Below, in pieces: positions 3,599 to 61,908 of a DNA stretch of 64,000 nucleotides. The stretch comes from Podarcis bocagei (Eukaryota). Under the pieces are notes generated by a model that did not search any database, was not told where the DNA came from, and saw nothing but the letters and a program-made list of their open reading frames with translations. A program made the position numbers and the translations under genes. Positions within the stretch are counted from its first letter, which is position 1. The number at the start of each line of letters is the position of its first letter. The stretch lies in NCBI GenBank assembly GCA_964188305.1, contig OZ076890.1; one strand, given 5' to 3'.

Positions 3599-4099
3599 TA
3601 TATCTGTAGGATTTTTTGGTTGGTTTTAAGTTGCTTTAGGTTGCCCTGGGCAAGGTAAAGTGATGGACAAATTTAATAAAATAATAAAATAAATTGGTAA
3701 TTATAGTGTAACTAATTAAAACAATGCTTAGTGGTTGGACTTTGTCATGTTGTCAAAAAACCTTGTTATTTAATGTTTTGTATAAAGAAGGTTAAGAAGT
3801 CTGTATGGTCAGTGTAGTAAACAGAGAGAACATGTTAAGTGGTTGCTGAATCAGCATTGCCCTAAAATGGTTTACAGTGTAATTCTTTATATGTCTGCTT
3901 GGAAATAAGGACCAGATAGTTCAGTGGGACTTACTTCCAAGTAAGTTTGAATAGGATTGCAGCCCTACTCCTGTAGAAGGTTTTGATAATGATGAGGAAA
4001 AGAGCAAAAAGAAGAGGTGTTCTCTGGCTAGGAGTATAGGTACTGTTTTTGCTTGGCCATTGATTTCTTCACTTGGGTTTTTTAAAAAATATGTACTTA

Positions 4100-4102
<3 letters not shown>

Positions 4103-4133
<31 letters not shown>

Positions 4134-4489
4134 CTTTCGTAGATTTTCACGGGTACAGGAATGCAGGTTTTGGTGTCTTCGGGTGTCTTCCCGTGTAAGA
4201 GTTGGGGTGTCTAGGCCTAGACACCCCAACTCTTACACGGGAAGACACCCGAAGACACCAAAACCTGCATATATATATATATATATATATGCAGGTTTTG
4301 GTGTCTTCGGGTATCTTCCCGTGTAAGAGTTGGGGTGTCTAGGCGACGTTTCGACGAGGTCTCACTCGTCATCTTGAAGATGACGAGTGAGACCTCGTCG
4401 AAACGTCGCCTAGACACCCCAACTCTTACACGGGAAGATACCCGAAGACACCAAAACCTGCATTCCTGTACCCGTGAAAATCTACGAAA

Positions 4490-4546
<57 letters not shown>
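4103..4546. mobile_element. Penelope-like element terminal (pLTR) fragments in inverted/fold-back arrangement within (TA)n
   Basis: Two perfect palindromes (4161-4270; 4289-4463), outer inverted repeat 4132-4160/4464-4492, three (TA)n tracts, hammerhead-type motif typical of PLE pLTRs. Confidence 0.75.
4374..4413 (+). ncRNA. Minimal type I hammerhead ribozyme motif, truncated at the fold-back axis and probably inactive in this copy
   Basis: (U)UGAAGA-U-GACGAG[UGAGAC]CUCGUC-GAAA-C-GUC: core boxes, 6-bp stem II, loopless ACGU stem III, GUC site ending 4407; C3 and stem I 5' strand replaced by the inverted arm. Confidence 0.65.
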
Positions 4547-4553
<7 letters not shown>

Positions 4554-8720: not shown

Positions 8721-10187
8721 TGGGCAACAGGCTACATGCCACTTCAGCTATGGGCACACTTTAAACCCAATGCTGCCACTCTCTCAGCTGACATATTTGT
8801 TTAGGTCACAGTGGCCCAGCTTTTCATGCCAAGTGGGCCGCAAGAGTACTCTGACATGGAAGCCAAGGGCCACAAACTGTCTTGTCACACGTTAAAGTGG
8901 GGAGGGGAAAAGCAAGGCAAAAATCTGAGCACTGCCTGCCTCCCCAGACTTTGTGCTGCCTTCCCAAAATTGGTAAGGTAAGGTAATGGGTTTTGGAAAG
9001 GAGCACAAGGCTCTGGCAGGTGTCCTAGAGTCCTCCCACCTCATTCCCAAAGCTGGAAGGACTCTAGGGCCCTATCAAAGCCCTCACGCCTCCTTCCCAA
9101 AGCCCAGGGTCTCTCTTATCAGGCTTTGGGAGGGCTGGGGTGTTTATCAGATGCTGCCAGCGCCATGCCTTGGACCACCCTGGTCTAGTTATTTTGATTT
9201 CAAACTTCTACAGTGCTGTGCACTTTACGCCTAAATATATTTTGATTTCGATCTGTCTGCCTCTGCAAAGCTTGGCAATCATACCTCCTTCCTTGGTTAA
9301 CAGCTGAAACAGTGGATTCAAAGATAATTTGCATTCAATTGATTTTTAATTCAGGACTTTGTTATGCCTTTGTATGTGAGAGAGTGAGAAGCAACATTAC
9401 AAAGGATTTACTCATTACCCTCATTTTATGGGACAAGCTAATTGTGGTTTGTCTTGCTGAGACGTATTATGCTGTTTGGGTCAATTGAGTGAATCCACTC
9501 TACACTGCAACATCATTCCTTGCTCTGTAATATTGATTTGAGCTGGGGGGAAAACCCAGAGGATTACTAGTTTGATGAGGTTTCTTTGTGTAAATTCTTA
9601 AAATCCCAGCTAATGTTCAAAACAGGCTGACTGTATAATTCATAAAGCACTGATGCACTTGATTTTTGGAGGGTGAAGGGTTTTTAGTGGAGGGATCAGT
9701 GCCTTAAGACCTCAAGATACAAAAGGTTGACGTACTCTGCATAACTGGGACAGTGGGTGATCTTAGGCACTCTTGAGGGATTTGTGAGCTCTGTTGTGTG
9801 TTTACTTTTAATTAGGCATTTGCATTTAAGTTAGTGGTAACTGCAGAATGGAAAGCATCTTCAGCTGTTTACAGTTATAGAAAGGGCTATATGAAAACAG
9901 TGCAGGTGGGTGGCTCTACGAGGGCAAAGAATGCAGCTGAACGGATTTTATTTCTTCTGCAGCAAGAAGGTAAGTAGAAGTATGCATGTGAATGCAGGGG
10001 TAATAAAAAGGCATACCCAGTTCTGTAAACATGTTGATGCTGACCTGAATTGACAGTCATGAGTGGCAGTGGTTGTCCTGGTTTCCTTATGCTATGACCA
10101 ACATAGGATTTGCATGGTTTTGTGGCCTTTCTGGGCACTATGATACTCATGGACTTGCTTATGAGTATCATGTTTTCCCACACATTA

Positions 10188-10530
10188 AAAGGTAAAGGGA
10201 CCCCTGACCATTAGGTCCAGTCGTGACCGACTCTGGGGTTGCGACGCTCATCTCGCTTTATTGGCCGAGGGAGCTGGGGTACAGCTTCCGGGTCATGTGG
10301 CCAGCATGACTAAGCCGCTTCTGGCGAACCAGAGCAGCACATGGAAACGCTGTTTACCTTCCCGCCGGAGCGGTACCTATTTATCTACTTGCACTTTGAC
10401 GTGCTTTCGAACTGCTAGGTTGGCAGGAGCAGCAACAGGAGCTCACCCCGTCGCAGGGATTCGAACCGCCAACCTTCTGATCGGCAAGTCCTAGGCTCTG
10501 TGGTTTAACCCACAGCGCCACCCACGTCCC
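10188..10530 (-). mobile_element. Sauria SINE (Squam1), full length, lacertid-type
   Basis: 13-bp TSD ttcccacacatta (10175-10187 / 10531-10543); tRNA-like head with GGTTCGAATCC B-box on minus strand; (ACCTTT) tail. Confidence 0.93.
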
Positions 10531-11229
10531 TTCCCACACATTAGGGCAGCCTTAATGGTCTGACTTTCTGGGTTTATTTGCTGTTGCTCTATGCTGTGTT
10601 GGATGAGGGTGGATATTTTTGTGATTAAGAGACTTGGTGCCAATCACCACCAAGTGACTCTTAATGTACACTCTTTAGTATTTTGATATTGTCTCAGGGG
10701 ATCTGTGGGACTGAATTGTATTTTAGTGTTCTATCTTTTCTACAAGCTACTTTGGGATTTCCTTTGCTTTAGGAAGCAATGCATAAATCTAATTAACTAA
10801 AGTTCACTGGCTACCTTACAGCACCAAAATGCTGCCTGCTCAGTAGACTAGAGGGAAGACCATTTCAAGGGAGCTACATGTGAACTGTAGCACACACCAC
10901 GAGATTGGCCTTGGCTTCTGTTTTGATTTGGCAAGTGTGCCAAAAGGGAAAAAGTGCCTTATTCTTTTCACTTTCCTTTTCCAAGCGTAGGTTTTTAAAA
11001 TTAAACTCATTACTTGGTTCCATTCCAGTTTGGTTTCTGATCTGCCTTGGTCACTTTGTGCTAGGGGAGGGAGTGCAGAGTACATCTTTGTATATTCCAG
11101 TTTGAAACAATCAGCCATGGTGTACTTCTGGCCAACTTGTTGGGGATGGGTGGTTGAGTGACTGCTTAGAGTGGCTCTGATCAGTGGAGAGCAGCTCCTA
11201 GAAGGTGGTGCTGGAGTTTCCTGATCTGT

Positions 11230-12200
11230 GACCTTTGACTGATGGGATTCTGAAGAGTCTGCTCTGTCCCCTATATGCTCTTTAACAGCTACATAAAACT
11301 GCTGAGTGAGGTTATCTGGATATTTTGGCATATGTTACCAAACTCTGTCTCTCGTTCCCTTCATCGAAACCCAGAAAGGCAGCAGATAGCTGTTTTGGAA
11401 TCAATGTTGGTGAATGAAGTAAAACATAATAATCTTGGAAGTGAAGATCACCCTTGCGTGGTACTCCTTTTGAAGCAACAGGTTCACAGTTTGGGAGACT
11501 TAGAATCATAGAATTACAAAGTTGGAAGGGACTCTGAGGATCATTTTGTCCAGTCCCCTGCAGTGCAGGAATATGCAGCTGTCCCATACAGGGATTGAAT
11601 CTGCAACCTTGGCGTTATCAGCACCGCTCTCTAACCAACTGAGCTATCCAGGCTGATTCTTGATATACATGTGACCAGGAGTTCTTTCAACCAACTTCAT
11701 TTAGTACACTAATTGTATTTTTCTTGGGAGTAGTATAACCAGTCATTTCTAGATTGGCGTACTGTAATGAGCTCAATGTGGGGCTTCCTTGAAAGATGTT
11801 CTGGAAACTTCAGTTGATGCAGAATGCTGTGGCCCCAGCTGTTGTCTGAGTTTACTAAGACAGGTCATATTGTGCCAGTTTCGTACCAGCTCTGCTGGCT
11901 GCCAATTTGCTCCTGGGTTCAATTCAAGGTGCTGGTTTTGGACTTTCAGTACCTAAATGATTTAAAGCTGGAATATTCCAGGAATTGCTTCTTCCCACAT
12001 GAACTTGCTTGCCTGTCACTCAGCTTCTTGCTGTACCTCCACCTATAGAAATTCAGTTGGTGGAGATGAGACACAGCTTATTTTTAAATTACGGTGCTCA
12101 GATTATAGAATGACTTACAGTCTAGTGTGTCTTGCCCCTTCATTGCCCACTTTTAAGTGTGCCCTGGAAGTCAGTTTTATTCAGCGGGCTTTTTAAAAAA
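11230..12200 (+). mobile_element. Degenerate L2-clade LINE (RT and C-terminal remnants), interrupted by a SINE
   Basis: MLFNSYIKLLSEVI resembles LFNIYMKPLGEVI; HIVPVSYQLCWLPICSWVQFKVLVL; boundaries approximate. Confidence 0.75.
11501..11654 (-). mobile_element. tRNA-Ile-derived SINE with CR1-type tail
   Basis: Minus strand AGCCTGGATAGCTCAGTTGGTTAGA...CTGATAACGCCAAGG... followed by CCCTTCCAAC...ATTCTATGATTCTA. Confidence 0.85.
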
Positions 12201-13223
12201 TGAAATCCATTTGAGTGGTTTGTGCTTTTGCTGTTTGTGTTTTACTGCTGCTTTTATTGTTCTTATTATTGGTATCTGATTTTGTCCGTATTTTAGTGTT
12301 AAGTTGTAATTTTCCTTTATTGTATAGAATGATGGAATGTTAACATAAATAAAATAATAAATGAAACTATTTGGTATAAATGCTATTCTGCTTTTTGTCT
12401 GATGTATGGAAGGAACAAACTGGCCAAAGATGTTCATACAAATGGAGTAGATGGGAAGAATGCTACTCTGAAAACTGTTGATGAGAGAGAGTTTGGTGGG
12501 GAGTCCAAGACTTATGTTCACACTCCTGCTTACTGTGCACTCACTGTGTTTTCAGTGCTGCATTTTTTATCTCTGTTTTCACAATGTTATCCAAGATGCA
12601 TAAGTATCCTGTACTTTGTTAATAAAATCCTGCTGTTTGATGCATTCTTTCTCAAACCAGAAGCTTCAGCTGGTTCCTTTCTAGCCAAGGTGTGAACACC
12701 TTTGTACAGGGCAAAAACATTACCACCCACCAATGCCCCCTGGTGTGTATAGAAACAGAATTGAATCTGATGCTAATGAAGCTGTGCTGATGTGAACAGT
12801 TGGGTTAGTGGAGGTGGGGAAGAGCTGTGAAACACACCAGAAAAAACTTCACTGCACTTTCAAGTTGATAAGTGAACATCTCTTAAGTATTCAGGAAAAT
12901 AGCTGCAAAACAGTCATGGAAGCAAACAGACATCTGCAGTCCTGTAGACTGATATAGCAGAGTTATAGCAAAGTTGACTTAATGTTGATAGTGCTTGCAG
13001 GAATCCATCACTGCTTAGTTTGCTTTTACATTTGTACATTGGCCTTTTCGATGACAACATCTTCAGTATGACTAGTTTATAGAACTAGTTCATAAGTTAT
13101 CTTTGTATAATTGAGGAAGTGAAAATAGTATACCTTTTTGGGCTGCCTATGTTTTGCTTAAAACCATGTACATATTCCCCAAATTCCCCAAATACTACTT
13201 CTACAGTTAGCTAACTAGTGGCG

Positions 13224-13225
<2 letters not shown>

Positions 13226-13283
<58 letters not shown>

Positions 13284-13296
13284 AAGAAAGAGAGAG
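13226..13296. repeat. Compound microsatellite (GT)n(GA)n
   Basis: Directly visible. Confidence 0.95.
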
Positions 13297-15383
13297 ATTG
13301 AATTGGTTTAGAAACTATGAATGCATCTTCAGGAGCGTCTTAGTTAAAATGACATTGTAGCACCTTTTGAATTCCAGATGAGAGGAAAATTATAGAAACA
13401 TCATTTGAATTTAGGTATGTCTCTGGGTGTAAAATAATCATAATATTTACACTAAGCCTGCAATTTACATAGGGGTTATGTTCTAGGGATTGCACCTAAA
13501 GCCCAAATTGTGTAAAGTCCTTGGTATAGTGGTACAGTGGTGAGTGGGATTGCCAAAATCCTTTTCCTCCAGACACCCACCTGCATTCTGCCCTCTTTTA
13601 AAATTTATTTACTTATTTATTTTAACAAGCACATAAAGCTGAATGCATTTAACTTAAATGTGTGTAAGCTGCAGGCTTACTGTAGATACCCTCAAAGCAC
13701 ATACCTGCTTAGCTGTCACTCATTTTCAGGGGAGTCAGGAAATATCACCTTGTGGCACGTTTCATGTTCCATGTATCTTCAATTAGAACTGCAACATTGT
13801 AATTAATCTTGGTATGCATGTTCAGGACAACGTTCTGCACCTGAGGTTTGAAAATCAGATTGACTTGTACATCCATTTTTTCCTAAACTCCAGAAGCACA
13901 ATAGATTCTATTGTGGCATCTGAAATGAGGCCTCTTGAACACAGTTCTTTAGTGTATTTGGATTTAATGAGAGTAGTTTGGTATACATGATAATTTTCCA
14001 ACTAAGCCATGGTGTCAGTTCATTGAAATCAGTGGGCATGGGAAATGCGTCTATTCTGACTAAAATTGATGTACTTTAATGTGTTAGGGTTTTAGAATTG
14101 TTTCACATGCACAGTATTTTGAGTGTGCTTAATATATGTCTAAAATCAGAATGGATAGATGTATTGCATTCTACCATCTAAATTCTCTGGCTATATTTCT
14201 TCCTAATTTTAAAGGTTTGAGCATATTACTTCAGAAGTATTTAAGTCTTCTGCCCTCCCTTAAATACCTTCTTGATCTTTGAGAATTGATCCTATTTCTA
14301 CCTGAGACTCGCAATTATTTTTAGTCTCATCTAAAGAACATGCTGTTAAATGTCATCTTAACTTCTTCATTAGTAGTTTGTTCCTCTAGTCTGTCTCAGA
14401 CAACTGCTATGAGGGGAAAACATCTATGATGCAGATGCCTGATTGTAGATAACCGTATAAATATTATTAAATATTATGCATTTAATAAAATAAATAGAAT
14501 ACCAGCCCCCTTTTCATTGCTAATTATTAAAAATGGCAGATGCTTCCTGAGCAATTTTTTTTGTCCTTTTAAAAGATTAGCTAAGTATCCTTAAACTATG
14601 CCAAAGTCTAACTCTTTGAGATACTTCCTCTAGAACATGTACTCCAAAAATAATTCTAAATTGTAGGCAAACTTTCTTTGGCCATTAGCTGTAGCCCCCA
14701 CCTTTTACAGAAAATCTGTTTGACAATTGTTCCTGTGAATAAGATAAGAATGAATTAGGGAATCTAAGCCTGCTTAAATAATTCTCAAGATTTTCTGGTT
14801 CACGTGTAGTGATATTGAACTCTTTAGTCATAGGCTTTAATTTGTTCATGGTGCTGACCTGATGCTGTGCAGGGACACTCACTGCATCCCTTCATTCAAT
14901 TCAGTCTAATTATCACCAACTTCCTGGGGAGCCTGCTTAGATGGAACTGGCCGTGAATGTTTGTTGTTAAGTAGTACGATATTAAGCTACCCTGGTTACA
15001 TTTAACAAAGTAGTTTTAGGCTTTGAATTTACATATAGATTATCAGCGTAGCCACATTCAGGTTTGCATTTCTTTGTATTATTTGTCAAAAGCCAAACCA
15101 CACTTGGCATAAAATGAAATTTAACTTCACGAGCCCTTGAATGTACCAACGAGCCCTTGTGTTCATTATACAGTATATATCCTCCTTCCCCTCCCTTTTC
15201 TCTTTTGTTTTGTGTCTGTGTGTCTGTGTGTCTGTGTTTATACTGTGTGCGATATATTTGAGCATACCTGTCTGCACGATGTGAATTATCTTTTTCATTT
15301 CCTAAAACAATAGTTAAAGGAGGTGGTAGTAAATGTATTTGCTGGCGCATATGTGTTAAAATGTGGACATTTTGTCTTTCCAG

Positions 15384-15497
15384 GTCCATGTGAAAATGGC
15401 GGATGAAGCAGTCTGTGTTGGCCCAGCTCCCACTAGTAAAAGCTACCTCAACATGGATGCTATCATGGAAGCCATTAAAAAAACCCGGGCCCAAGCT
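15384..15497 (+). CDS. PCCA: PCCA coding exon (human exon 5 equivalent), [38 protein letters not shown]
   Basis: tttccag acceptor and gtgagt donor; 114 nt, phase 0/0; peptide matches recalled vertebrate PCCA. Confidence 0.98.
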
Positions 15498-17407
15498 GTG
15501 AGTCTGAATGAGTCTCTCCTCTGCAGCTGTTTCATATATAGAAAGCAGAGAAGCTAGAGTTTGTATTTAAAGATAAAAAAAAGAAGCGAGGGGGAGAATG
15601 ATTGAATATGCTATTCCAGTTTAGTTCATGTCACATGAGTTAAATGTGGCCGAAATCGCTACTGGAAATCAAAGGCTTTTGTAGCATCTGGCAGTGCCGG
15701 TTGCTGATCCTGCAGGTGGCTGCTGGATTCAGCTTTCACACCAGGGAGCAGCTTCAGTTCATTTCCAAATTTGCTGGGGGTGGGGGTGGGAATCCCAATT
15801 AGTTTAGAGCACTAACCCTTTCTGTGCCGTAGCCTCTCTTTCTGGATGTCTTTTTTTATAAGACAGCAGTAATCTTGCTTAGTTTTATTTTATTATTTGG
15901 CCTGTGTGAGAATTTTTATCCACATGGTGAATATGATAAATGGTGCACTGAGTAATTATTTTTTAGTGTTTCATGTTGCTGACAAAACATGATCGACTAG
16001 GTGTGCAGCCTGTTTTCTTCTCTTCCCTCTGCCCCTCTATCCTTCAATAAGGTCAAAGAGTCAAAGTTTAACAAGAATGGTTGGCATTTTAAAAAAATGA
16101 TGACAATAATACTTTTTTCCTTGTTGCATCGGTGAATGCAAATGTGGTCTTCAGAACTGCTGAATGCGAAAGCATCTTTAAATAAAATTCGCTGGATGGG
16201 AGTCGGACAACACCAGCAATTACCCTGGAGTGTCTCAATTAGCATTATCATTTCTTTTGAAATGAATGTTTCAGTATGGTGCATTTGGAAAGGGGGAGGG
16301 AGGAGGAAAATGGCAAACAACATTAATTAGCTAACAGACACTGCAGATGTTTACATTGTTAGTTAAGAAGATTTAATAGAGATAGAAATAGTTCAGGCTT
16401 TCATCTTTAGCCTGCCACCTAGATTTCCTTAGCTACGCATTTACGAAAGATTACAAATTATGAAACTGAAGGTGTTCCCACTTTAATGTGTTCTGTAATT
16501 ACTCTATGTACCATGTGGTTGCATTATTTTGATACTGAGGCATTTTGTAAAAAAGGTTTCTACAACTCATTTGTGGTCTACTGGTTATTTTTTTTTAATA
16601 AAAAAATACTATATTCTGTGTTTGAAGTGGGATTTGTAGCAGAGCTGCTAACATTGAATACTGGCACTGTGGTTAACTTGAGGGCCAGAAAAATGTTTTT
16701 GAGAGAAGAGCTTGGAAGGTTAGAGAAATGTGAAAGGGTATGGAGAGAGGCGCTTACACACAGAGAAATGTAATAAGGAAGAGCTTCTAGAATCCTCTGG
16801 TGGGAATAGAAATGAAAATAAGTCAGAATGACCGTATCTGTGTAGCTGTCAGGCCTGGGTTTCTCACCCAGGTTGATACCTGTTAGATACTTTGGAAGGT
16901 GGTGCATAGATACCATGTTTTTAGCACTTGTATGTGAAATGTTAGCATGCCAGAAAATTGTGGCCTAGGAGCATATGATAACATTGCAGCCACCGGTGAT
17001 CTAGTTTATATGTGATTGTGAACATAGGGAACTCTGAACTGATAAACCATTGTTTTTTCTTTGTCTTGTTTAAAAACAAATACGCTGTACATTTAAATTA
17101 GGACTGAGAGTTGAGGAGTGCATGAAGTGGCTTATGCTGCGGTTTAGAGTAAGCTATGGATTTCCAGAGTTCGTCATATGATGGAGAATGGACTTATTCT
17201 AGCTCAGAAACTTTATTTCCTCACTAGCAAAACGGGTTCCAACAAAATGACTGCCATAAGGGGTGTTTTCTGCCGTATCTACTCATCTAGTATAAAGTAC
17301 AAGTAAACTTGCTGCTTTAAATTGTAATTACTGATGAGATGCTGTCAGCATCAAGCTTTCAGTTGTCTAAAGCAATGAAACCTACTCTTGGCTTTTATTT
17401 TTAAAAG

Positions 17408-17461
17408 GTCCATCCAGGATATGGATTCCTATCTGAAAACAAAGAATTTTCTGGCCGTCTG
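17408..17461 (+). CDS. PCCA: PCCA coding exon (exon 6 equivalent), VHPGYGFLSENKEFSGRL
   Basis: T-rich tract + aag acceptor, gtaagt donor; 54 nt; biotin carboxylase HPGYGFLSEN motif. Confidence 0.97.
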
Positions 17462-18685
17462 GTAAGTTTTTTAATGATGCATGTGTCTGAGCATGGTGTG
17501 GTGTATTGCTGTATATTGCCGCAGCCTTTGAAATAATTAATCAGCATGGTTAATGTATTAAAGTTTTAATCACAGATTAAAATTAATGCCATCAATGAAA
17601 ACTCCCTTTCCCCATCTTGAAGACCCTGCTCCTTTGTAGGCTACCATCTCTGCCTTCCATTTTCCTTATTTGATAGAAAGAAGCTTAGATTTTTTCCTTG
17701 CGGTGTATCTGAAACTGTGCCTGGATAACTTGACATTTGGGATGAAACTTTTGTAGCATACTCTCTAACAATGAAAACCAATGGAAACATGCATCAGTTA
17801 ATCCTTTTAACCTTTTCATTCAGTACTCATGGGCTGGTCTTGTTTGTTTCTTTGAAGCCACTTTGTCCCTTGTGGGTACTGCATATTTCTGTAAGGCAAC
17901 TGTTCTGAAATGTAAGCTATGAAATATGGACATCAGTGAATGACATTTATTTATTCACTTTGTTTCCTATTTGAAAAAGTGAAGAGAGTGCTTCCCTTAA
18001 AGAGCCTCATGGTAATACCCTCTATGGGCTTCTGGCTTCTGTTGTGCCTTAAATTTTATCACTTGCCTGTGTATTAATTGTGATTTTCAGTTATTCCTAT
18101 CTGCCTTGAAGAATTTTGTTCAGAAGCAACCCACAAATATTAAATGAATCTTGTACTTTGTACACATTGGATATTGTACACACTGATAGATTACTTAAGA
18201 GCCATAAATTACTTAATTTTTCAGCAGGCAATCCTTTTAGGAAGCCGTTTTTTTTAAAAAAAGCATCATTGTTGTAGCATGTATTGTATTAAATCACACT
18301 GTAATATCTGCAGATTACCAAAGATGTGTAATGTCTGCAAGTAGATCAAATTATCAAAATCCCACTGGTCTCACTAATTATGCTGGGATCCAATAGGCCT
18401 TTTTTTGGTTTCCCTTCTCACCTATCACCTCTTCCCTCAACTGCACTTGAAGGAAGGTCTTGGAGTGGGATTTGATGATCTACTAAGGACTGCAGTTGAC
18501 AAGTTGAGTCGTGTCAGGGGAAAAAAGTGGGATATAAATATATAATAAGAGTAAGTGAAAATTACTACCCCTCACTGCATATGCAGAAGAGTTTTCTGCT
18601 TACATATGGAGGAACTATTTGAATTCCAGTTGCTAACTGATGTGTGGGGATGTTGTAGTGTGGAAAGGGGGGGAAGATACTTGTA

Positions 18686-18927
18686 CAGTGGTACCTCAGG
18701 TTACATACACTTCAGGTTACATACGCTTCAGGTTACAGACTCCGCTAACCCAGAAATAGTGCTTCAGGTTAAGAACTTTGCTTCAGGATGAGAACAGAAA
18801 TCGTGCTCTGGCGGCGCGGCAGCAGCAGGAGACCCCATTAGCTAAAGTGGTGCTTCAGGTTAAGAACAGTTTCAGGTTAAGAACTCACCTCCGGAACGAA
18901 TTAAGTACTTAACCTGAGGTACCACTG
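18686..18927 (+). mobile_element. pogo/Tigger-like MITE, family B (242 bp)
   Basis: TA flanks; cagtggtacctcaggtta / taacctgaggtaccactg; 16-bp ggttacatacgcttca repeats. Confidence 0.92.
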
Positions 18928-19483
18928 TATACAAATGAAAAGGCACATAGCCCATTTTGGAAGCATTGATTTTAAATCAGGTTTCCAGTTTCGCAATTCA
19001 TGCTTTTCTTGTACAAGTGTGCCTACTAGTCAGTTGTTCTAACAAGGAAAGCATATTTGTCTGTAACTAAATAAAGCATTTACAGCAATATTATTTGGGA
19101 GTGTAATTCAAAACCTCTTGTCGTGAAGCCCACATGCCTTATGTAGTTTACAGTTGCTTACCCTTGTCTCTAAGAGATAACGGAATAGCAACAACAACAA
19201 AATAAGCTAAGCACTGGTGAGTTCATGCACACACCCTCCATGCCCCCGTGACTCATAATTTTTTACTCTAATTCAGTTCATTCAAATGCACATAAAATAC
19301 ACATTGTGTCTGTTGTTAAACCAGCACAGCCAGATGCTGCGCTGGTTGCGGTCCATGGTGGAGACGGTGGGGCTCTCAGGCCTACCGCCAGTGATATGTT
19401 GACTGCTGACTCTGGGTGGGCTGCCCAAGAGCCGTTGATGAGCAACTTGCCCATGTTACTCTTGATGATCAAGGGGTCCATTT

Positions 19484-19658
19484 CCACTTGAGGAAGCCTG
19501 AGATCAGCCTGGCCCTCTGGAGTGGCGAGTCGTGGCTGCACTCGGTGTAGAGGCCGAGCAGGCGTTCCAGCAGTGCCGCCACACCCAGGCCTCTCTCACT
19601 GCGGCGGTTCGGCTAAAAGCAGCTGCTCCAGGTTCTTCAGCTGCACTTTGGCTGGCAT
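19484..19658 (-). pseudogene. CDC42BPB: Frameshifted copy of CDC42BPB (MRCK-beta) first coding exon
   Basis: GCCACC-ATG; MPAKVQLKNLEQLLLAEP / frameshift near 19604 / RSERGLGVAALLERLLGLYTECSHDSPLQRARLISGFLKW versus recalled human [58 protein letters not shown]. Confidence 0.85.
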
Positions 19659-19850
19659 GGTGGCAGAGGAGGAGCAAGTGGGGTGGCTAGTTGAGTCCAC
19701 CAGGAAGAAGGGAAAGGCCATGATAAAGATGGTGAGGGAGCAGAATCCCGGTGGGCCTGGATGACTTGGAGCTGCACCTCTCGGCCTGTAGGCCATTGCC
19801 AATGTGTGAAGTATGAGTAGAAAATCAAGTAGAATTTCATTAGGTTCTAT

Positions 19851-20164
19851 AAAGGTAAAGGGACCCCTGACCATTAGGTCCAGCCGTGTCCGACTCTGGG
19901 GTTGCAGCGCTCATCTCGCTTTACTGGCTGAGGGAGCCGGCGTACAGCTTCCGGGTCATGTGGCCAGCATGACTAAGCCGCTTCTGGTGAACCAGAGCAG
20001 CGCATGGAAATGCTGTTTACCTTCCCGCCGGAGCGGTACCTATTTATCTACTTGCACTTTCGAACTGCTAGGTTGGCAGGAGCAGGGACCGAGCAACAGG
20101 AGCTCACCCTGTTGCGGGGATTCGAACCACCGACCTTCTGATTGGCAAGTCCTAGGCTCTGTGG
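19851..20164 (-). mobile_element. Sauria SINE, slightly 5'-truncated
   Basis: Near-identical to 10188-10530; lacks the first ~25 nt of the head. Confidence 0.92.
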
Positions 20165-20297
20165 GGGCATATATATTATAAATGATAATTTTTTAAAAGA
20201 TCTGTGTCATTTTAACGTGCCTGTCTTGTTGAAATGGAAGGTGCCATGTACTGAGTATGGTTATTTCTTTCTGTGTTGTGGCACTCTCTTAGGCATG

Positions 20298-20301
<4 letters not shown>

Positions 20302-20385
<84 letters not shown>
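20302..20385. repeat. Compound microsatellite (CT)n(CA)n(GA)n
   Basis: Directly visible. Confidence 0.95.
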
Positions 20386-21280
20386 TGACACTTGTGCTGT
20401 GTCATGTGACATTCAGTGCAGAGGCATTTTGCAGTAGCTCTGCTTATACTTGCTGGGAGAATAATTGTTTATTTCCTAGTGACAAAATGCTGTGTTTCTG
20501 GTAACTGGGAAAATGCAGTATCTTTACAACAGCAGCACCAGCCTGTGAGAAGGTATCTGAATCCTGTGCAAGAGCGAAAGAGAGAACTGCACATCTATTG
20601 TGTGGAAAGGCTGTAAAATAGATTTTTTAAAATGATGTACAAAGGTAGCTTTAAAAAAATGTATGGTTAGACCCAGCTTATGTGTTAGCATGTATGATTA
20701 GCTATACTGAGCTGTTACCTGTTGGCTTCAGGCTTTTCAGGGCACAGCTGGTGAAGGGTACGACCCTAGATGTAGATTTTCCAGCCTAAAAATGCCCCAA
20801 AACGTTTGTGTGACTTTATTATCTTTTGTCCTGTCCTGTAGTATTGTACTGTTTTTGCTTTCTTTTCAAAACCTTTCTGTTCCCTTGATCTTACAATTTT
20901 CTTGCCAGTTCCCTCTCCTGTCCTAGGTTCCAGTATTTCCCTCCTGTTTTCCTGTTCCGCTAATCTCAATATTTATCTCCCATGCTCCACTTCTGTTTCT
21001 CTGAGCCTGCCTTGATGTGACTTCATCTTGGGGGTGTTCTTTCCATCTCTTTACAAAGGTTACCTCCAACTCCAGTTTGTGGTTTTGCTCTAATTTCCAA
21101 GTTATCTTGCCCATTTCTTTCAGCAAGATGGCTGTGAAAGTTGAGGGGGAAATTCCAGATGGCAGACAAGCTGCTTACCCCTCCTATCCCTCACTGAAGA
21201 GGACCACAACACTCCGCTGTGGCCTCACTTCATAGTCTTTTGAAAGTCCCCGCAACAGTACTTTGCAAACGATGAATAAT

Positions 21281-21341
21281 AAAAAGGTAAAGGTAAAGGA
21301 CTCCTGGATGGTTAAGTCCAGTCAAAGATGAATGGGGTTGC
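21281..21341 (-). mobile_element. Sauria SINE 3'-end fragment
   Basis: aaaggtaaaggtaaaggac...gttaagtccagtc...ggggttgc. Confidence 0.65.
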
Positions 21342-21489
21342 AAAATTTATTGTTGTAGGTATGTTTATATCGCTATTGAATTATATTCCCAGTGTGTCTT
21401 TCAAAAAAGGAATTAAAAAAATTAAACTTTAAATACACACAGTAATCTAAAAGCCTCTGAATAATAAAAGCAGTCAGCAGAAGCCAAAT

Positions 21490-22250
21490 TTATTTTAAAA
21501 ACTGGAGAAAATAAAGTATTTGCCTAATATATAAAGGCATGTTTGTCTTTTGAGGCAGACGGATGCTAACAACTGAGTAACTTTGGACCCAAGTACCAAA
21601 AATGATTGCCTGTTTATGGAGATCCCCCCTGAGTGAAATCTCTCCTAGGTGAACCCCAGCTGTCCCCCACACTACTATAGTGTTGAGGTGCAATCTGATT
21701 ATTTGCTCAGGGTTCTGGCATATAGGGTGTATAATCACTATTATGCTGTCCTGTGTTCACAATGTGGATAACATGTTAAAAAATGTTTTATGGTTGAATT
21801 CATGTTTTACGATGTTAGCTCACCTTCTGGTGGAAAGGCAGGCTATACAACTATTGAAATAAATGTGCCAATACAACAATAAAGTAGGCATCCAATGAAC
21901 CTCTTTGAGGAGACCATTCCATAACTGGCTAGCCATCCACCTCACCTCAGATGGTAAGTATGACTTCCAAAGAATATGTTAATTTATGGGTAGGTACGTA
22001 TGGAGCTGGTTGTTCTTTTAAGTTTCCCGATTGTAAGATGCGAAGGGCTTTAATAATGAAAACCAGCACTTTGTGTTGGGCCCAGAAATGGATTTGAAGC
22101 CAGTGCAGTATGCATACTATCATTGCATACTAACTACTGATTTTACTGACTGCAATTTCCAGTCTTCAAAAACATTCCCATGTGTAGTGCATTAGAGTAG
22201 CCTAACCTGGAGGTTACTAGAACATGGATGACCTAAGGCAGACTATCTGG
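21490..22250 (-). mobile_element. Old L2-clade LINE 3' fragments
   Basis: aaaccagcactttg...tgggcccagaaa...gccagtgcag and acctggaggttactag are the reverse complements of the L2 motifs at 2.2-2.5 kb; boundaries approximate. Confidence 0.6.
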
Positions 22251-23860
22251 AAACATAAATTCACTGTCTCTACCACCCTTTGCTTACACTTCTGGTGTGC
22301 ATATGCCCCCAAAATATAGGAGGGTGCATTGTGTCAGAGGCAGAATATTAAAGAATAAAAACCCCTGGTTACCTTACCTTGGATATTGGCTGTAAAGTGC
22401 TGTTTAAATTGGCACAACTTGGGGCCTGATATGTAAAGGCTTTCATATTTGTACCTGTGATTAGTTTTGGAGGACATTATAGAGAACTTGCAAATCATTA
22501 AGAGAGCTTGAAATGCCTTACAGATGCCTAATATTGGACCATCCAGGTGGCTTAAAGATAATTTTGCTGCACATGAACAGCTGCTTTAGTCTGAAGGCTT
22601 CACCTGCCACAGTAATATTTGAGGTTGGGGGAGCAGAGAGTAGACAGTATTCTAGTCCAGCAAATGACCATGCTGTGCTGCTTATGTGAGTAGAGGTCCA
22701 GTGTACCTCTTAGCAAGGCTAATTTTGTCATGTGATCAGTCCAGCGTAGGGCCTTTGGATCTATGTTTCATAACGTGAAATGGTTAAGAGACTGCAATTG
22801 CTATTTAAAAGTAGCAGTGAAAATGCTGCAGAAAAATGAGGAAGTAACACGTCAGCACATATTCTTGTATTTAATGTGTTGGTAAATCATGCTCCAGATC
22901 ACATTTATTGTTTGAAAATGTGCTCCAGGCAAGCTAAAGTTACTTGATAATAGGCTGTGTTTTTACTTCTCTGCTGGTTTGCTGCATTTGAAAAGGGACC
23001 ATATTTTGGATTCTTAAGTTCGTTGTTGATATTGTTACTTATTGAATTTTGTATCACCTGCACCAAAGTTTCTATGTGTGTTACAGCATACAAAATAGGA
23101 AACCCAATTAAAAATCCCTACGTGCAATTGCATGAGAATGCCAATAGCCTACTCTTCCATTATGCATATGAAAAAAGGAACTTCCCCATCCAAATTAACA
23201 AAAATGAAAACCCCAAGAAACAGTATTAAAAGCTGTTGTCAAGAGGAAGAAGTTAACTCTAAACCTCTAAAAACTGTGCCACTGCTAAAATGTACAAAAC
23301 AAAGCCTGGGAAGAAAGAATATATTTTTCTTTCTGTTGCTGAAAAGATTGCACAAAAGACACCAGGCGAGCGTCTCTCGGGGGGACCGTTTCATAGGCTG
23401 GAGGCCAGATATAGTCAGGTTTTGCTGCTTCAAAACGTAATTTCAAAATAGATTTCTTTCTTGGGACTTATGTTGGCAAAACAGATATAATGAACATATT
23501 TGAAGAAAGAGTGATAATTTCTCAGGGTGCACTTGGTTGGATTCACCTATCTGTTCAGGGCTCTGGAAGGTAATGTGCAGAAGTGGTGTACTGGTTTGCT
23601 TACCTGTCTTTGTTAGTTCAGCCCTTATTAACTCATCGCTAATGTCAGTTTTTCATTTAAAAAGAATATTCTACTTGCTAACGAAATAAGAAAAGTTATT
23701 TATGTAGGGTGCAACTTAACCAAATGATAACCTAATTCTAATGGGTCTGTCGTTGCATGATGCTGAGCTTTGTTTCTTTCTAAAGTTAGTGGGAAATTGG
23801 AAAGGATACACCCAGTTGCCTTTTAGCAGAGTTTGCCATTTGAAAGAATTTTCTGACAAC

Positions 23861-23980
23861 AACAACTTGTTTGACTTACTAGTCACTTACTACAAAAAAT
23901 ATCTTCAGCGACATACAAAAAACAACTTATTTGACTTACTAGTCACTTACTACAGAAAATATCTTCAGCGACATACAAAA
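23861..23980. repeat. Tandem duplication, 2 x 60 bp, 2 mismatches
   Basis: aacaacttgtttgacttactagtcacttactacaaaaaatatcttcagcgacatacaaaa repeated head-to-tail. Confidence 0.95.
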
Positions 23981-25956
23981 AGCTTCCAAGCCCAAATAAG
24001 TAAATTAGAATAAAAAAGTGAATCTCCTTTCTTAATGGAAAAAAGGAGGTGTGAAGTTGAATGCTTTGATCTTTAACAGAAGATAGATTTTACTCCCAAG
24101 CAAATGGTTTTCCCACTAGGCTGTCCCAGAGCTGGCATTAGCTGGCAATTTCCCTAAATATAAAACAATGAAACAAAAGCATTTGTTCATGTTGTCGTGA
24201 AGCTATTATGTTGCGGTTTGGCTGCCAAACTTGGCAATTTTGCAATCATTATTCCACTCTGGGCTCACTTCCTAGCAATCTGGTGGGTTTTCGGGGTTTG
24301 GATTACAAGATTGGTGACAATATCCATGGCCAAATTTGTTCTAATGCAGACGGGATTAGTTTTATTCTTGGATATTCATTTGTATGTCGTAAGGTGAATA
24401 TTGTGTCAAGTAACATTATATGTTAGTAAGATTTTTAATTTCTGTAGGAAAAAATGACAGCTTTCATGTGTTTACTTTTTAGCTTTAAGTATTAGGACTA
24501 TGTAAGATGAATTTCTTGCATGCAAATCACTTTTCTGTGGGGGCCAAATGTGTAAATTGTATGTCAAGAACGCACAAACATGTTTGTTTCCCTGTTTTGT
24601 GTATCTAATTGAAACCTAATTTGGAACAGATGCAGAGGGCACAAATGGGAACTCGTGTGCCTTTTAAACTGTACATTGGCAAAGTAGATAAGGTCCTATA
24701 TTTTTAAATGGTGAAGTTCATGCGTGTTGCTTCTTCACTTCCGATTGAAATAACTGTAAAGAATGGTTATATATATATCACATAGCTGGATTTTCCTTGC
24801 TCTTTTTCATTATAATCCTGAACCTTATGTGGATTTTATGATTCACAACTTTGTCTTACGCATGTGGTTTAGAAGGTGTATAGCTAGATCCAAGAGGAGG
24901 GAGCAGAAATAAATAATTCAGAATGTTCTTTACTAATTGATCTCAATAGATGAGCGTTGTAGAGTTGAAAGCAAAGCTTAGTTTAACACAGAGAGGGTAA
25001 GTTCTTGTGAATGATACACACATAAACATGTCACTTTTTCATTATTAAATGATTCATAGAACAACACATGCTGGAAACAGTTGCCAATTAAGCATACTAA
25101 TTTTAGTAACTACTAATGTTCTGATCAATTTTAAAATATTGAACTATTGCAGGGTGGAAAATGTCAGTACAGCTGAGCTGGCTGCCCCTCCCCCCAAAAC
25201 AGTTTTCACTCCATTGAAGCTTTGTAAATTAAAGTTTATACCTAAATAACTGACTGAAGACTATGTTGATATATCCAGTGAGGTTCATCCAGTTGTCTCG
25301 GTTTATCCACTTATCTCAGAGGACGAAATCGAAATAATTTCCTTTTGTTTGTTTGTTTTCTAACTGGAAATGTGCTTTGGTTCCTTGGTACACAGGAGCA
25401 CCAAAAAAGGCCTGTGTGTCCTTGGGCTGAACAAGAGATGGGGAGGTGATATGTATTTATTTTCCCTTTCTCTTCAGGAATATTGCCTCTTTTGTACATC
25501 ATAACCCGTGGGCCATATATCCCCACTCGACATTTTCAGTGGGCTGTAGAGAGCCCTTGACAGTTGACACTTTTAAAAACTGACTTTTAAAAATCCCATA
25601 TTTTTACCTCATGTGGACTTGTAGTCTTGCCCCTATGCCTCTGGGCTACTTTTGAGTTATTTTTGCCCTCAAATCTGCTCAGCTTCCAATCAGTAGCCTT
25701 CAATGCTCACAGGGCTTTCAGAGCCCTTGTGAAAATTTCATGTGGCTGTTTCTGGGAGCTGCAGTGCTTTGGCTACCAATAGGAGCCATCATGACTAGTC
25801 ATTCATAAACTACTGAAAGTATCACTGTGTTAGCTCTCCTTCTCTGCTTATCAGATACAGAGTCCCCCTCCCCCCAAAAACTTCCAAAATATAAAAATCA
25901 TTCTGTTTTCAGGGGGCATCTCTGTTAAGGAAGGAATCCCTGCTCTTTATCTATTT

Positions 25957-26273
25957 CAGTGGTTCACAAACATTCTCCCCCCCACGGACCACAATTGTCT
26001 TGTAGCAGGTAATGTGCTTTGCTCGATGTAGCATGATTTTTAATTGCATTTTTATTCCTTCTTTTATTCCTTATACTGCATTTTGTTGTTTTATAATCTA
26101 TATTCCGTAGAATTCAAATTGTATTGCAGTAAAATATATTATATGAAATAAAAGAAGCAGTAAAAATATAATTTAAAAATGAATATGAATATTTAATGTT
26201 GTCATGCTGCAGGCCACCTAAATGAAGCTCACATACCACTGGTGGACCATAGACCACTGTTTGGGAACCCCTG
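25957..26273. mobile_element. Old hAT (Charlie-like) MITE
   Basis: cagtggttcacaaac ... gtttgggaacccctg termini; degenerate 8-bp flanks atctattt / ggctatct. Confidence 0.6.
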
Positions 26274-27741
26274 GGCTATCTGAATTCTTAGTACTCATTC
26301 CTTCTCTTTCTTTCCAGCACTGTAGTATATGTCACTTTCAAGAAAACATGTGGCTCAATCCAAAGTACGAAAATTTTAAAGCCAGTGATCATTGATCTGA
26401 GAAAGCATAGCTGCCCATGAAGTAAATGCTGTGTCATCAGTTGTTTTGAAACTTCTGTATATTTTCTGAAGTGTTTTTATTTGTAGCATGGAGGAGGGCT
26501 CTTAAATTGTTAGCTTTGTTCATTGTGACCTTTGAATAGAAATTTTAAACTAAAAAAAAAAAGGTATATGGAAATAAGCAAAATAAGCATAGAACATACT
26601 ATAAACTGGACAATGCCGTAAACATTGGGAAATGTTATTTCAGGTTACGAGAAGCATTCCTAGGTGTAATAGTCACAGTTTATACAGCCAGGTGATAATC
26701 TGGTGCTGCTATTAAATGCTGTTGAGTTGCTCAGCCATCTTAATAGCTCCTCTGTTATATTTTACCTATTTTGGCTTTTTAAAATGTGGACATTTCTATA
26801 GAAAAAAAAGTTAGTTAAACATAAGATATGGAATTATTAGTTAATGGAGATTAGTGACAGAAACATGAGTACAATGTGTTCATTAATGTAAATGTCATAA
26901 AATCAAGAAGATGTGGCCATATGGCCATAAAACAGATTAGAGGAATGGCTGGATATTGCCATTATTCCTTACTAGTAAAATTCCTTGCTTGCATGTAAAA
27001 AAGGGTGTTGCCTGTCCTTTATTGAAAGATAGTGTTCTGAGTTAGATGGACAGTTGACATGACCTAGCATGGCTGGTCTTAAATAGAAGCTCTCTTAAAA
27101 CTTAATTATGTGGTTTACATGAGAAGCGTCATTGGATCTGAACCTCCACTTTAATCAGTACCCAACAGTTCTCTTATGCTTTTTAGGTTAACCTTGAGCT
27201 TGACGAAAAGCTGCTGTGTAGCACTTCTATTATGCAGGCTCTTTGATATGGTGCTGAATTGTGGCTTTCAGTACACACAGGGTTAAGTGAAAAGGTTATA
27301 GTAATCTAGTGTGCATTTTCCCTTTTTTTTTAATGTGCTCATTAGCAGTGACAAGTCCAAGTTTTAGCCCATGTCAGTAATTTACATTTCATTGCTAAGT
27401 GACTGCTCTTGTTCAAGGGCTCTTTCTAAGGCTGTTGAACATACTTGTATTGGGAATAAACAGAGTAGAAGAATTGAAAGCCAAATATCCTGCCAGGCTT
27501 TTCAGTAGGTTCTGAAGTTTCCAGTAGATCACTGATTAGCAGTGCGTGGAGCCATACGAAAATAAAAAGATAATGCCTATAAAAATTATCACAGGTAGGC
27601 TGTCGTATTTTAAAACTCCTTTTGTTGCTACCTTTACTGTCATCCTCCCTAAATTCCTCTCTCCTGCCAGGCCTTCTCTCAATGTGAAACTACAGCATAT
27701 TTGAGACAAAGCAAGAGAACAATGCCTTGTGCACCAGGCTC

Positions 27742-27788
<47 letters not shown>

Positions 27789-29574
27789 ATACACCTCCCC
27801 AACTATTAAGCAAAGTCTGATTGTTATGAGGACTGAGGAAACAAAGGACTTGATGGGTTTTGCAGTGCTCTGGGATCAAATTATAAAGCTTTGAGATCCT
27901 GTGAATTCCTGCCTTGGGACTCACGTTTCCCATTCTTTGCGATGCGCACCAGCTTGTTGCAGCATTCTTAATTTGAAGGGATGCACGCGATGGAGAAGAC
28001 AAATGGCGGGACTAGAGGGGCAACATGGTGTAGTAATGGTGCTCTGAGCATGTCAGTTGCCAATCTCTATATAGACATTGCCAGCTGTGGCAAACATTCA
28101 CACAGTTTTGTCTGATAAGGGTTGCTGTCAAGCTGAACAACAGAGAATGTGTGTGTGTGTGTGTGTCTGTGTGTGTCTGTGTGTGTGTGTGTATAAAACC
28201 ATCATCATTCTAATATAGACATGCCTTTCACCCCAGTTCAGATATTAATGTCAGCCAGTTAAGTTTCCTTTCTTGCAAAAACAGGATCCAGGCTATTGCT
28301 ACTATAGTATATTGTCTGAACATGGAAAATATTCAAAGAGGAAAACAAGATTTAAGTTTAAAGAGAGCCAAGCGGGGATACTTCCACATCTTGAAGTTAG
28401 GCACCAAAAATGTATGGCAACTTTGTATGGCAAATGTATGGCAAGGAGATTGAGCCTCCTCTTTGGGTAAAATATATACATCAGAAGGTCAGTGAGGTGA
28501 CAGCAATGAATTGTTTCATTTCAGGTGGTTGTTAAAAGAACCATCACTTTAAGAACTGGTACATGAACTTACTTTTTTCCTCATCCCTCCTCTCTCCTTT
28601 TTCCTTCTGTCATGTTTTTAAGATTGTAAGTTATCAGGGGCTATCTTACTACTGATCTTTGTAAGCTGGGACCTTTTCAGCTAAAAAACAAGGTGGCATA
28701 CTTTAAACAAACTGATTTGTGTGTGTGTTAATCTAATTAAAAATTATGGTCATGACTGTTTTCATTGCATAAATTACAGCATTTGACAAAGGTACTAATT
28801 TGCTGGTTTATTCCCAATAATAGATAATATACAAAGTAAGACAGGCTAATTTTTTTGGCCTATTTTTTGGGAAAATATTTTTAAGAAATATTTTAGCTTT
28901 CAAATTGTACAGAGTGTTGCTTCTGCCTAAGGCTGTTCAGTTTAGTTTGAATCCAAGTGGTTACTTTACCTGCTTTACTGAAAGTGGCAAACCCTCTTCT
29001 GAAATGAGTGGGAACAGGAATGAGAACACTTATTATTAACTTTGTTACTGGCAGCTACACATTCCTCATATGACATTAGGAACTAAACTTCCTGGCAAGA
29101 CAGGAATTTGAACTTGGATCTACCAGTTGCAAAACCAATGTTTTAACCATTTAAAGCACATAAATTAGCAGTTAGATAGTCTGGTATAAAGTGTTGTTTC
29201 AGAAGTTGATATTTATCCTCCTGGCAGCAGATCACCAAGGTCTCAAGACTTTGGGCTTTGCTAGCTGATCTATTTTAACTGGAGAATGCCGGAGACTGAG
29301 TCAGGGACCTTCTCCATTCATCCTCCTGCTATTCATGTGGTTAATCTTGCCACTTTCAGACTTTGATTTGCTCTGTCTTCAGAACCATGATCTAGAGCAG
29401 GGTTACCTACCATCTTCTGCTAGGAACAAGTAGATACCTTGTTGAATTCCGAGTGCCATAATTAGAAGTGTATCCTGACCACATGGTAATTCATGCATAT
29501 CAAACGGCATGGGAGAATCATGTGGGTCCTTTCACATGTGAGTTGATGCCAAAATAAATTGGTTAGTTTTTAAA

Positions 29575-41915: not shown

Positions 41916-42109
41916 AAAGAAAGTGTTATGCTCTTTCTACCTGTGCTGCTTTCTCACCCTGGTGGATTGTGGCTAGTCATTGAAACAGCATCCTAAAAAG
42001 GCTTCTTATGGTCAGAGTAGGCAGTGGTACTGCTTGATGACATGTGCTTTTGGACAAGGAGAGTTATAATATTTGTTACTATTCTACAAAAGTGTGTTTG
42101 GCCTAAATA

Positions 42110-42351
42110 TAGTGGTACCTCGGGTTACAGACGCTTCAGGTTACAGACGCTTTAGGTTACAGACTCCGTTAACCCAGAAATAGTACCTCGGGTTAAGAAC
42201 TTTGCTTCAGGATGAGAACAGAAATTGTGCTCCGGCGGCGCAGCAGCAGCAGGAGGCCCCATTAGCTAAAGTGGTGCTTCAGGTTAAGAACAGTTTCAGG
42301 TTAAGAACGGACCTCCGGAACGAATTAAGTTCTTAACCCGAGGTACCACTG
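42110..42351 (+). mobile_element. pogo/Tigger-like MITE, family B (242 bp)
   Basis: TA flanks; first base C>T; near-identical to 18686-18927. Confidence 0.92.
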
Positions 42352-44003: not shown

Positions 44004-44349
44004 GGTAAAGGTACCCCTGCCTGTACGGGCCAGTCTTGACAGACTCTAGGGTTGTGCGCTCATCTCACTCTAGAGGCCAGGAGCCAGCGCTGTCTGCAGA
44101 CACTTCCGGGTCACGTGGTCAGCGTGACAAGCTGCATCTGGCAAGCCAGCGCAGCACACGGAACGCCGTTTACCTTCCCGCTAGTAAGCGGTCCCTATTT
44201 ATCTACTTGCACCCGGGGGTGCTTTCGAACTGCTAGGTTGGCAGGCGCTGGGACCGAGCGACGGGAGCGCACCCCGCCGCGGGGATTCGAACCGCTGACC
44301 TTTCGATCGGCAAGTCCTAGGCGCTGAGGCTTTTACCCACAGCGTCACC
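44004..44349 (-). mobile_element. Sauria SINE, second subfamily, CpG-rich
   Basis: 13-bp TSD acacatttatata (43991-44003 / 44350-44362); diagnostic differences from the 10188 copy. Confidence 0.92.
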
Positions 44350-48818: not shown

Positions 48819-49609
48819 TGAGACGCTGTCCAAAATATAGTTTTGATGAATACTGCTGTTTCCAAAACCCCATTAAACCACTGTGAGCTGACAGTCAAAC
48901 AGATATCAAACAGCAGATTGAAATGCAACAGTTTCTGCTCTTGTCCCTTGGCACGTCTTAGCAGTTTTTTTAAACATTGGGGTTATACACGTATTCATTT
49001 TGAATGTAAGTTGAATTAAAATAATGTCTTATAAGAAAAAAAGAGCCCAATGATTTGTCTGATTTCTGATTGCTAATATTTGAAGCATGTTCTCTCTCCT
49101 CTCTCCCACTGTCCCATTCATACCCTGAAAATCTGCTCCAGAGGCTTGGGGGCCCCTCTGTAGCAGATTTGGGGGAGGGTATGTGGGGAAAGGAATGGGA
49201 AGTTTGGTTGTGTGAGCGGGATGGATATACATACAACACTTAGCCTTTAGCAGCTTCAATGTAAAAAAGTGTATTTAACATTTTTTTAAGAGAGAGGGAG
49301 AGACATATAAATAGTGACAATCACATCTAGTGGTTGTGAATGCTGTAAAACGGTAAATAGGTATGAAGTGATCCAGATGGCTCAGTGGTGCTTCTGAGTC
49401 CTGTCCTTCCCGAAGCTTCACGGCCCCCAAAACAAGATTAGTCTGCAAAGTTTCTTATATAGCACATCAGGGTAAACAATACTTTAAAAAGTTCCGTGCA
49501 CATGTTTGCATACCCATGCTTGTCGTCGGAGTTGCTGTCTGGCTTGCAAGCATGGCTTTAACATTCATGGGGTAAAGAACTCTTAAGTCAGCAAGGCAAT
49601 ATTTAAATA

Positions 49610-61605: not shown

Positions 61606-61908
<303 letters not shown>

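Follow-up and report, generated by a model that had tools for sequence, protein, structure and literature searches.

A lizard PCCA intron contains a decayed copy of CDC42BPB exon 1 that belongs to a small family of dispersed chimeric repeats

In the window, by which we mean the whole 64,000-nt stretch of Podarcis bocagei DNA that was analyzed, positions 19167 to 19740 (minus strand) are one old, decayed copy within a small family of dispersed chimeric repeats. At its 5′ end the unit carries a copy of the first exon of CDC42BPB (MRCK-beta), and where the parental exon ends it runs on into foreign sequence. We lean, with reserve, toward an origin in which CDC42BPB exon 1 was spliced to another RNA and the chimera was then retroposed several times.

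Identity and host gene of the exon 1 copy

The GC-rich island described in the first-pass annotation is present (55 to 63% GC over 19300-19800 versus 31 to 43% farther out, e.g., at 17000-18700), as is the minus-strand GCCACC-ATG that had been placed at 19658 (19664-19656, with the ATG at 19658-19656). In the first minus-strand frame the translation is MPAKVQLKNLEQLLLAEPPQ, ended after 20 codons by the stop at 19598-19596; the next reads (PNR)RSERGLGVAALLERLLGLYTECSHDSPLQRARLISGFLKW, followed by KWTP and a stop, four codons on. Together, positions 19740 to 19484 (minus) comprise about 81 nt of 5′ untranslated region (5′ UTR), the GCCACC-ATG, and CDC42BPB exon 1 in full, at 59 codons. In the coding part (Met1 to Trp59; 19484..19658, minus), the loss of 2 nt between 19604 and 19603 destroys the frame: the parental CCG CGG CGC reads CCG C-- CGC in the window, and a TGA is put in frame at 19598-19596. 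This is the single frameshift that had been noticed near 19604, and in a multiple alignment the 59 codons align to the squamate parents with one 2-nt gap.

The attribution to CDC42BPB exon 1 is borne out by PDB, protein-index, and DNA matches. In the PDB, the second piece of the reading frame (19484-19606) matched MRCK chains only, with E values of 2.9e-4 for MRCK-beta (residues 20-58) and 0.37 for MRCK-alpha; the first piece matched CDC42BPB only, collinearly (residues 1-18 to 1-18), with an E value of 1.1, which is weak alone. The best true match in a set of 1.84 billion representative proteins was a squamate exon 1 read-through protein (P0002; 63% identity, E = 1.8e-7). At the DNA level, positions 19739-19484 of the window matched the exon 1 contig that encodes this protein (L001) at 190 of 261 positions (E = 3e-41), and a further squamate contig (L003) was 78.7% identical to the window over 188 nt; nucleotide identity between the coding copy and its squamate parents is 77 to 79%. 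When the copy was read through with an X at the frame break, 38 to 40 of its 58 residues matched those of squamates, 36 those of one sauropsid-type sequence, 33 to 34 those of birds, 27 those of mammals, and 21 to 23 those of fish, and it has the squamate-type residues PRR, GLYTEC, DSPL, and RL[VI]S. These sequence comparisons confirm the fragment as a pseudogene copy of the host lineage's own CDC42BPB exon 1, beta rather than alpha. The LYTECSH motif, which had been called identical, is so in comparison with human; the squamate parents, however, have LYTECSR, and the H is a secondary CGC-to-CAC change.

Many MRCK-beta "proteins" in the databases (P0002, P0004-P0006, P0008-P0012, and others) consist of exon 1 plus translated intron (...DFLEW|GE..., from TGG G|GTGAG). 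The same was noted at positions 10001-28594 of the Naja naja locus (L002; CM019148.1). These read-through mis-annotations usefully marked the exon boundary.

The copy had been placed antisense in a PCCA intron, and the surrounding exons agree. Upstream, 17408..17455 (plus) encodes VHPGYGFLSENKEF, which corresponds to human PCCA residues 139-157 (E = 1.6e-3); 61741-61896 (plus) corresponds to residues 305-356 (E = 1e-23), and collinear plus-strand exons with similarity to PCCA lie at about 48.7, 54.8, and 57.2 kb. With PCCA exons on the plus strand on either side, the minus-strand fragment is intronic and antisense. A true first exon brought here by an assembly error was considered and rejected: PCCA exons flank the copy on the other strand, the 64,000-nt window contains no other MRCK exon, a contig from a related organism carries the same 2-nt deletion, and a separate parental contig and mRNA reads differ from the copy at many sites.

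The intron holds other repeats as well. Three tRNA-related SINE copies were found, one of which (19851..20164, minus) adjoins the upstream side of the exon 1 copy, outside the repeat unit; the others are at 10188-10503 (95 and 72% in two blocks) and 44187-44329. By its appearance the SINE may be of the squamate "Sauria" type. On the other side, and outside the fragment, lies a MITE of about 246 nt (18684-18929) with 25-nt terminal inverted repeats (TACAGTGGTACCTCAGGTTACATAC). Its further copies are at 42108-42353, 53721-53966, 51161-51370, and 63825-64000 and, inverted, at 49601-49828, making six in the window at 84 to 95% identity; this MITE family is fairly young and abundant. A compound (CT)n(CA)n(GA)n microsatellite at 20294-20394 forms a long hairpin, and the Rfam microRNA matches there were discarded as subthreshold, low-complexity artifacts. 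A repeat search also returned inverted arms of 87 to 143 nt at 4074-4550.

The exon boundary and the repeat unit

In all three parental loci, likeness to the copy extends through TGG and breaks off a single base short of the conserved G|GTGAG splice donor. Where the parents read TGG-G|GTGAGGA, the window reads TGG-AAATGGACC; none of the six donor letters is kept, compared with about 80% of the neighboring letters, and the end point at 19484 is common to the comparisons with L001, with L002 from Naja naja, and with the third squamate contig, L003. The species' own transcripts end their match at the same base: at 19484 parental mRNA reads part from the window and go on with GCGAAACCATTTACTCAGCT, which encodes A-K-P-F-T-Q-L, the start of exon 2. 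As these reads leave at the exon 1/exon 2 junction, the likeness of the copy ends at the species' own splice junction. The statement that similarity halts at the end of parental exon 1 is thereby upheld by three parental loci and by own-species mRNA.

Neither exon 2 (AKPFTQL...) nor the parental intron follows the exon 1 end, and no MRCK match lies downstream of it. A degraded exon 2, suggested by a weak D..IIK likeness seen by eye, was rejected when 19281-19490 gave no MRCK match. What is fused to the exon end is foreign sequence (19394..19483, minus) with no protein or PDB match. It resembles neither exon 2 nor the intron start of three other squamates, a comparison that rests on these three and on the universally conserved donor, and its junction with the exon is common to paralogues.

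Upstream of the start codon, the annotation had counted about 140 nt of UTR-like sequence. About 81 nt of this (19659-19739) proved homologous to the CDC42BPB 5′ UTR, and the rest is not demonstrably so. The proximal 5′ UTR copy (19659..19740, minus) ends in GCCACC, aligns to snake exon 1 loci (L001, 371-450; L002, 9918-10000), and marks where the repeated unit ends on its 5′ side: over 19671-19740 the contigs of paralogues match at 84%, and past 19740 they no longer agree. The GC-rich 60 nt next to it (19741..19800, minus) is single copy at 80% likeness or more and has no likeness to the 5′ regions of L001 to L003; it may be further parental 5′ UTR or target DNA.

Contigs and reads of public runs were placed on 18950-19850 at 80% likeness, both for the source species (organism A) and for a related organism (organism E). 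The interval is complete in organism A runs, in which one contig is identical to the window, and is present in four related organisms at shares of 31-letter words from 0.78 to 0.38, which by our estimate correspond roughly to 1 to 3% divergence. The flanks at 18950-19166 and 19756-19850 drew a single contig only, and every part of 19167-19755 drew extra contigs, 80 to 95% alike, in both A and E. Copy counting, which the first-pass annotation had named as a check, therefore speaks against a single capture: the block 19167-19755 is multicopy between single-copy flanks. In all of this, word depth is not copy number, and contig counts were taken as lower bounds.

About 5 contigs lie over 19512 and 2 to 4 over 19601-19740; pieces at 19436-19557 and 19454-19543 straddle the exon end at 19484, and variants at 19467-19474 appear in three contigs of organism A and two of organism E. 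At least three A contigs and at least two E contigs run through from the exon end into the foreign sequence, at 15 to 20% divergence. At least five joints (19393>19506, 19354>19618, 19393>19618, 19345>19517, and 19231>19475) connect MRCK with downstream coordinates, keeping order and strand, while being silent on the sequence between their sides. Taken together, the junction-crossing contigs and the collinear joints indicate that the chimeric junction is ancestral to a small dispersed family. Of the earlier proposal, a duplication by an RNA intermediate or exon capture that kept only the 5′ exon, the absence of exon 2 stands; the exon was not captured at the PCCA site, as paralogues share the junction.

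Beyond the sequence fused to the exon, the unit continues as a mosaic of unequal abundance. A 41-nt segment (19353..19393, minus) ends in GTCTCCACC-ATGG and provides a second Kozak-like start, CCACC-ATGG, at 19361-19353; its word depth is 14 times the single-copy level in A and 22 times in E, far above that of the exon copy, and its other copies run on differently (CCCACT...) after the ATGG. For the further part of the unit at 19270..19352 (minus), paralogous pieces were seen at 19278-19354 and 19220-19326. Over 19313-19383, three organism A single-cell RNA reads agree with the window before departing from it, so the 41-nt segment has an expressed relative, and 19313-19352 is similar to an RNA expressed in the same species. 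The most abundant part of the family is the 3′-terminal 71-nt segment (19199..19269, minus), to which 16 contigs of A and 20 of E align at about 85% identity, starting or stopping exactly at 19199 and 19269. A T-rich, (TTG)n-like low-complexity tail (19167..19198, minus) closes the unit and has similar sequence in other copies: in both species the unaligned ends before 19199 and 19184 are rich in A when read on the plus strand, and depth left of 19167 is single copy. Across the unit, copies are most abundant over the 3′-terminal 71 nt and least so toward the 5′ end.

For the partner (19167-19483), searches of the PDB, a 5.8-billion protein index, Pfam, and Rfam returned no match. It gave no fold signal, no self-match within the window explains it, and it has no likeness, by nucleotide or translated comparison, to the 10 kb upstream or the 28 kb of intron 1 of the Naja gene or to two other squamate contigs. 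An exact look-up of four open reading frames of the block found them in no other assembly.

Decay, age, and expression

The copy has changed without regard to its coding sequence. Its nonsynonymous divergence (dN) from squamate parents is 0.17 to 0.19, about 8-fold the value between real orthologues (0.023, with dN/dS of 0.04 to 0.06), and its changes at otherwise invariant sites are spread 5/11/10 over the three codon positions, with no excess at the third. The dN/dS comparison with the parental exon that had been suggested thus returned a neutral pattern. CpG positions have changed in 10 of 25 cases (40%) versus 16 of 129 (12%) for other positions, and the CpG count is down from 17 to 19 to 9. 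Judged by these substitutions, the copy is neutrally decaying, methylated DNA that formerly belonged to a CpG island.

In organism E, one 957-nt contig covers all of 18950-19850 without gaps, with 24 differences in 901 nt (about 2.7%) and the same 2-nt deletion; because this orthologue shares the frameshift, the insertion predates the split between A and E. A separate, 848-nt parental contig of organism E matches exactly 19484-19664, with 34 differences and an additional CC behind 19603 that restores the frame. The copy and its own-lineage parent are therefore about 19% diverged (34 of 181 nt plus 2 indels; 81% identical), and the copy and its paralogues 15 to 20%. Set against the 2.7% between A and E, the parental divergence of about 19% makes the family many times older than the A-E split.

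Single-cell RNA reads of organism A were placed at 19477-19600, mostly below 90% likeness (as were 21 of all 24 reads placed) and with variants as in the parental contig. One loose end of these reads is the exon 2 start described above; the other is GCTGCTGCTGGACGGGCCGCGGCGCAAC (LLLDGPRRN), on the gene strand. Their loose ends and variants mark the reads as parental mRNA cross-mapping onto the copy, and no read in this data set is 99% or more like the copy itself. The copy encodes nothing.

A 329-nt contig (19240-19568; 97.6% identical) was found in a small organism E run (X15) that is only guessed to be RNA. It may reflect transcription, targeted capture, or PCCA pre-mRNA. Five more small organism E runs (three studies in all) contain a small share of 18950-19850.

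Origin of the chimera and comparison with known systems

The reading that we favor, if by no wide measure, is that CDC42BPB exon 1 was spliced to another RNA and that the chimera was retroposed several times. Exon 1 would have been spliced, in cis or in trans, onto a partner, with a retroelement or an alternative terminal exon of intron 1 as the probable candidates; reverse transcription of the chimera and several insertions would have come next, one of them antisense in the PCCA intron. Neutral decay would have followed, bringing the frameshift, the premature stop, CpG loss, and changes at invariant positions. An RNA route is favored because the junction lies within one base of the donor, where a random DNA breakpoint would fall with a chance of about 1 to 2% over 250 nt, and because the unit contains no promoter or intron DNA and is most abundant at its 3′ end; 5′-truncated retroposed copies would give such a gradient. 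That no donor letters are kept argues against a DNA copy running into the intron. Between the two routes that the first-pass annotation had left side by side, the splice-donor junction makes RNA no more than probable.

Two observations count against this route. The low-complexity tail is T-rich, not A-rich, on the sense strand, and copy number along the unit is nonmonotonic, with a peak at 19353-19393 that could reflect a mosaic of several sources. In addition, the unit has no A-run on its 3′ side, and the best direct matches between its flanks, sought as target site duplications (TSDs), were at or below shuffle level; the poly(A) tail and TSD reported as lacking are indeed not seen, and a copy about 19% diverged could have lost both to decay.

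An alternative that seems unlikely, though it has features of the unit on its side, is that the exon was cargo of a nonautonomous DNA transposon, a Pack-hAT or Helitron, which copied the CpG island 5′ end together with other host pieces and whose own ends were lost or decayed. A multicopy family with a mosaic-like interior and a terminal segment commoner than the cargo is what such an element would present, and animal Pack-TIR elements are mostly hAT, including a multicopy 5′ UTR capture (PMC8277862). Terminal inverted repeats (TIRs) with an 8-bp TSD bracketing the block, however, numbered 0, versus chance expectations from shuffles of 0.07 (strict) and 1.3 (relaxed), and the ends defined by depth lack inverted likeness (score of 6 versus a shuffle mean of 7.6). 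For a Helitron, the 3′ end region contains no CTRR-T and gives no hairpin signal, and no Helitron termini were found. Transposon cargo also sits poorly with a piece that ends within one base of the donor, includes no intron start or promoter, and is followed by single-copy flank straight after the 5′ UTR piece.

Improbable, in our judgment, is a segmental or ectopic duplication at the DNA level with repair patching and no mobile element, in which only coincidence would have placed the break at the exon end. Such an event would account for a patchwork of unequal copy numbers and for the lack of any transposition hallmark, but the unit is only about 570 nt long, lies between single-copy flanks in each of two species, and breaks at the exon end, where the same chance of about 1 to 2% over 250 nt applies, with several dispersed copies keeping that junction. 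A functional element, be it an antisense promoter or first exon of a noncoding RNA in PCCA or a selected small open reading frame, is very improbable: the 329-nt contig at 19240-19568 in the organism E run guessed to be RNA, the intact GCCACC-ATG, and retention of the copy in at least five related organisms could be cited for it, but PCCA intronic pre-mRNA would yield such a contig too, retention at 1 to 3% divergence is expected of neutral DNA, none of the source-species RNA reads is 99% or more alike (21 of 24 fall below 90%), and the open reading frame ends after 20 codons amid neutral substitutions and CpG decay.

If exon 1 was indeed spliced to a partner RNA and retroposed, the closest match in mechanism would be the first-exon/LINE-1 chimeras of humans. 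According to a 2025 preprint, most human mRNA/LINE-1 chimeras take the first exon or exons in sense orientation, with splice donor and acceptor sites at a share of the junctions, and one chimeric sequence, RAP1GDS1/L1PA2, is known from two independent insertions (10.1101/2025.02.02.635956). Like these, the lizard unit comprises a first exon and its 5′ UTR, in sense, joined at the donor, with no later exons and with the junction at more than one site. Unlike them, it has a partner that no search marked as a LINE, and it has no open reading frame, poly(A), or TSD; moreover, the lizard copies are old, at about 15 to 20% divergence, and their sense-strand tail is T-rich and (TTG)n-like.

Other known systems share some of these features. 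Pack-TIR elements in animals are mostly hAT and rarely multicopy, and include a 5′ UTR capture in a frog (PMC8277862, Tan et al. 2021). They resemble the lizard unit in carrying a gene 5′ fragment at several loci, in their mosaic interior, and in having a terminal segment that is commoner; the lizard unit differs in that it has neither TIRs nor an 8-bp TSD and stops at an exon boundary. Chimeras made by template switching (U6/L1 and tripartite; PMC2104539) likewise join unrelated RNA-derived pieces head to tail in one orientation, but they mostly have a complete small RNA as their 5′ partner, and their junctions lie off splice donors, whereas the lizard unit contains a first exon joined at the donor. 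With classical processed pseudogenes the copy has in common that it is intron-free, disabled, neutral, and inside an unrelated intron; in contrast to them, it consists of exon 1 only rather than the 3′ part, without exon 2, poly(A), or TSD.

The first-pass annotation had called the fragment unusual on the ground that retrocopies normally keep their 3′ ends. It is true that only the 5′ exon was kept, but first-exon-only chimeras are already a described class, and the copy in the PCCA intron is a real but ordinary member of it. Its value is that of a clean example, in which the break at the splice donor is confirmed by the species' own mRNA and the junction recurs in several copies. For annotation, an intact Kozak-ATG with remnants of a CpG island can mislead gene finders and attract cross-mapping reads.

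The partner parts are themselves repeated (up to about 20 contigs), are most abundant toward the 3′ end, and have no reverse transcriptase match. A broader conjecture, and a rather doubtful one, is that lizard first exons are joined by splicing to mobile RNAs, non-L1 retroelements or others, and amplified as small families; if true, this would be the reptile counterpart of the human first-exon/LINE-1 chimeras. The family described here indicates that, in a reptile genome, fragments made up of a first exon alone can multiply into a family, with RNA as the probable route.
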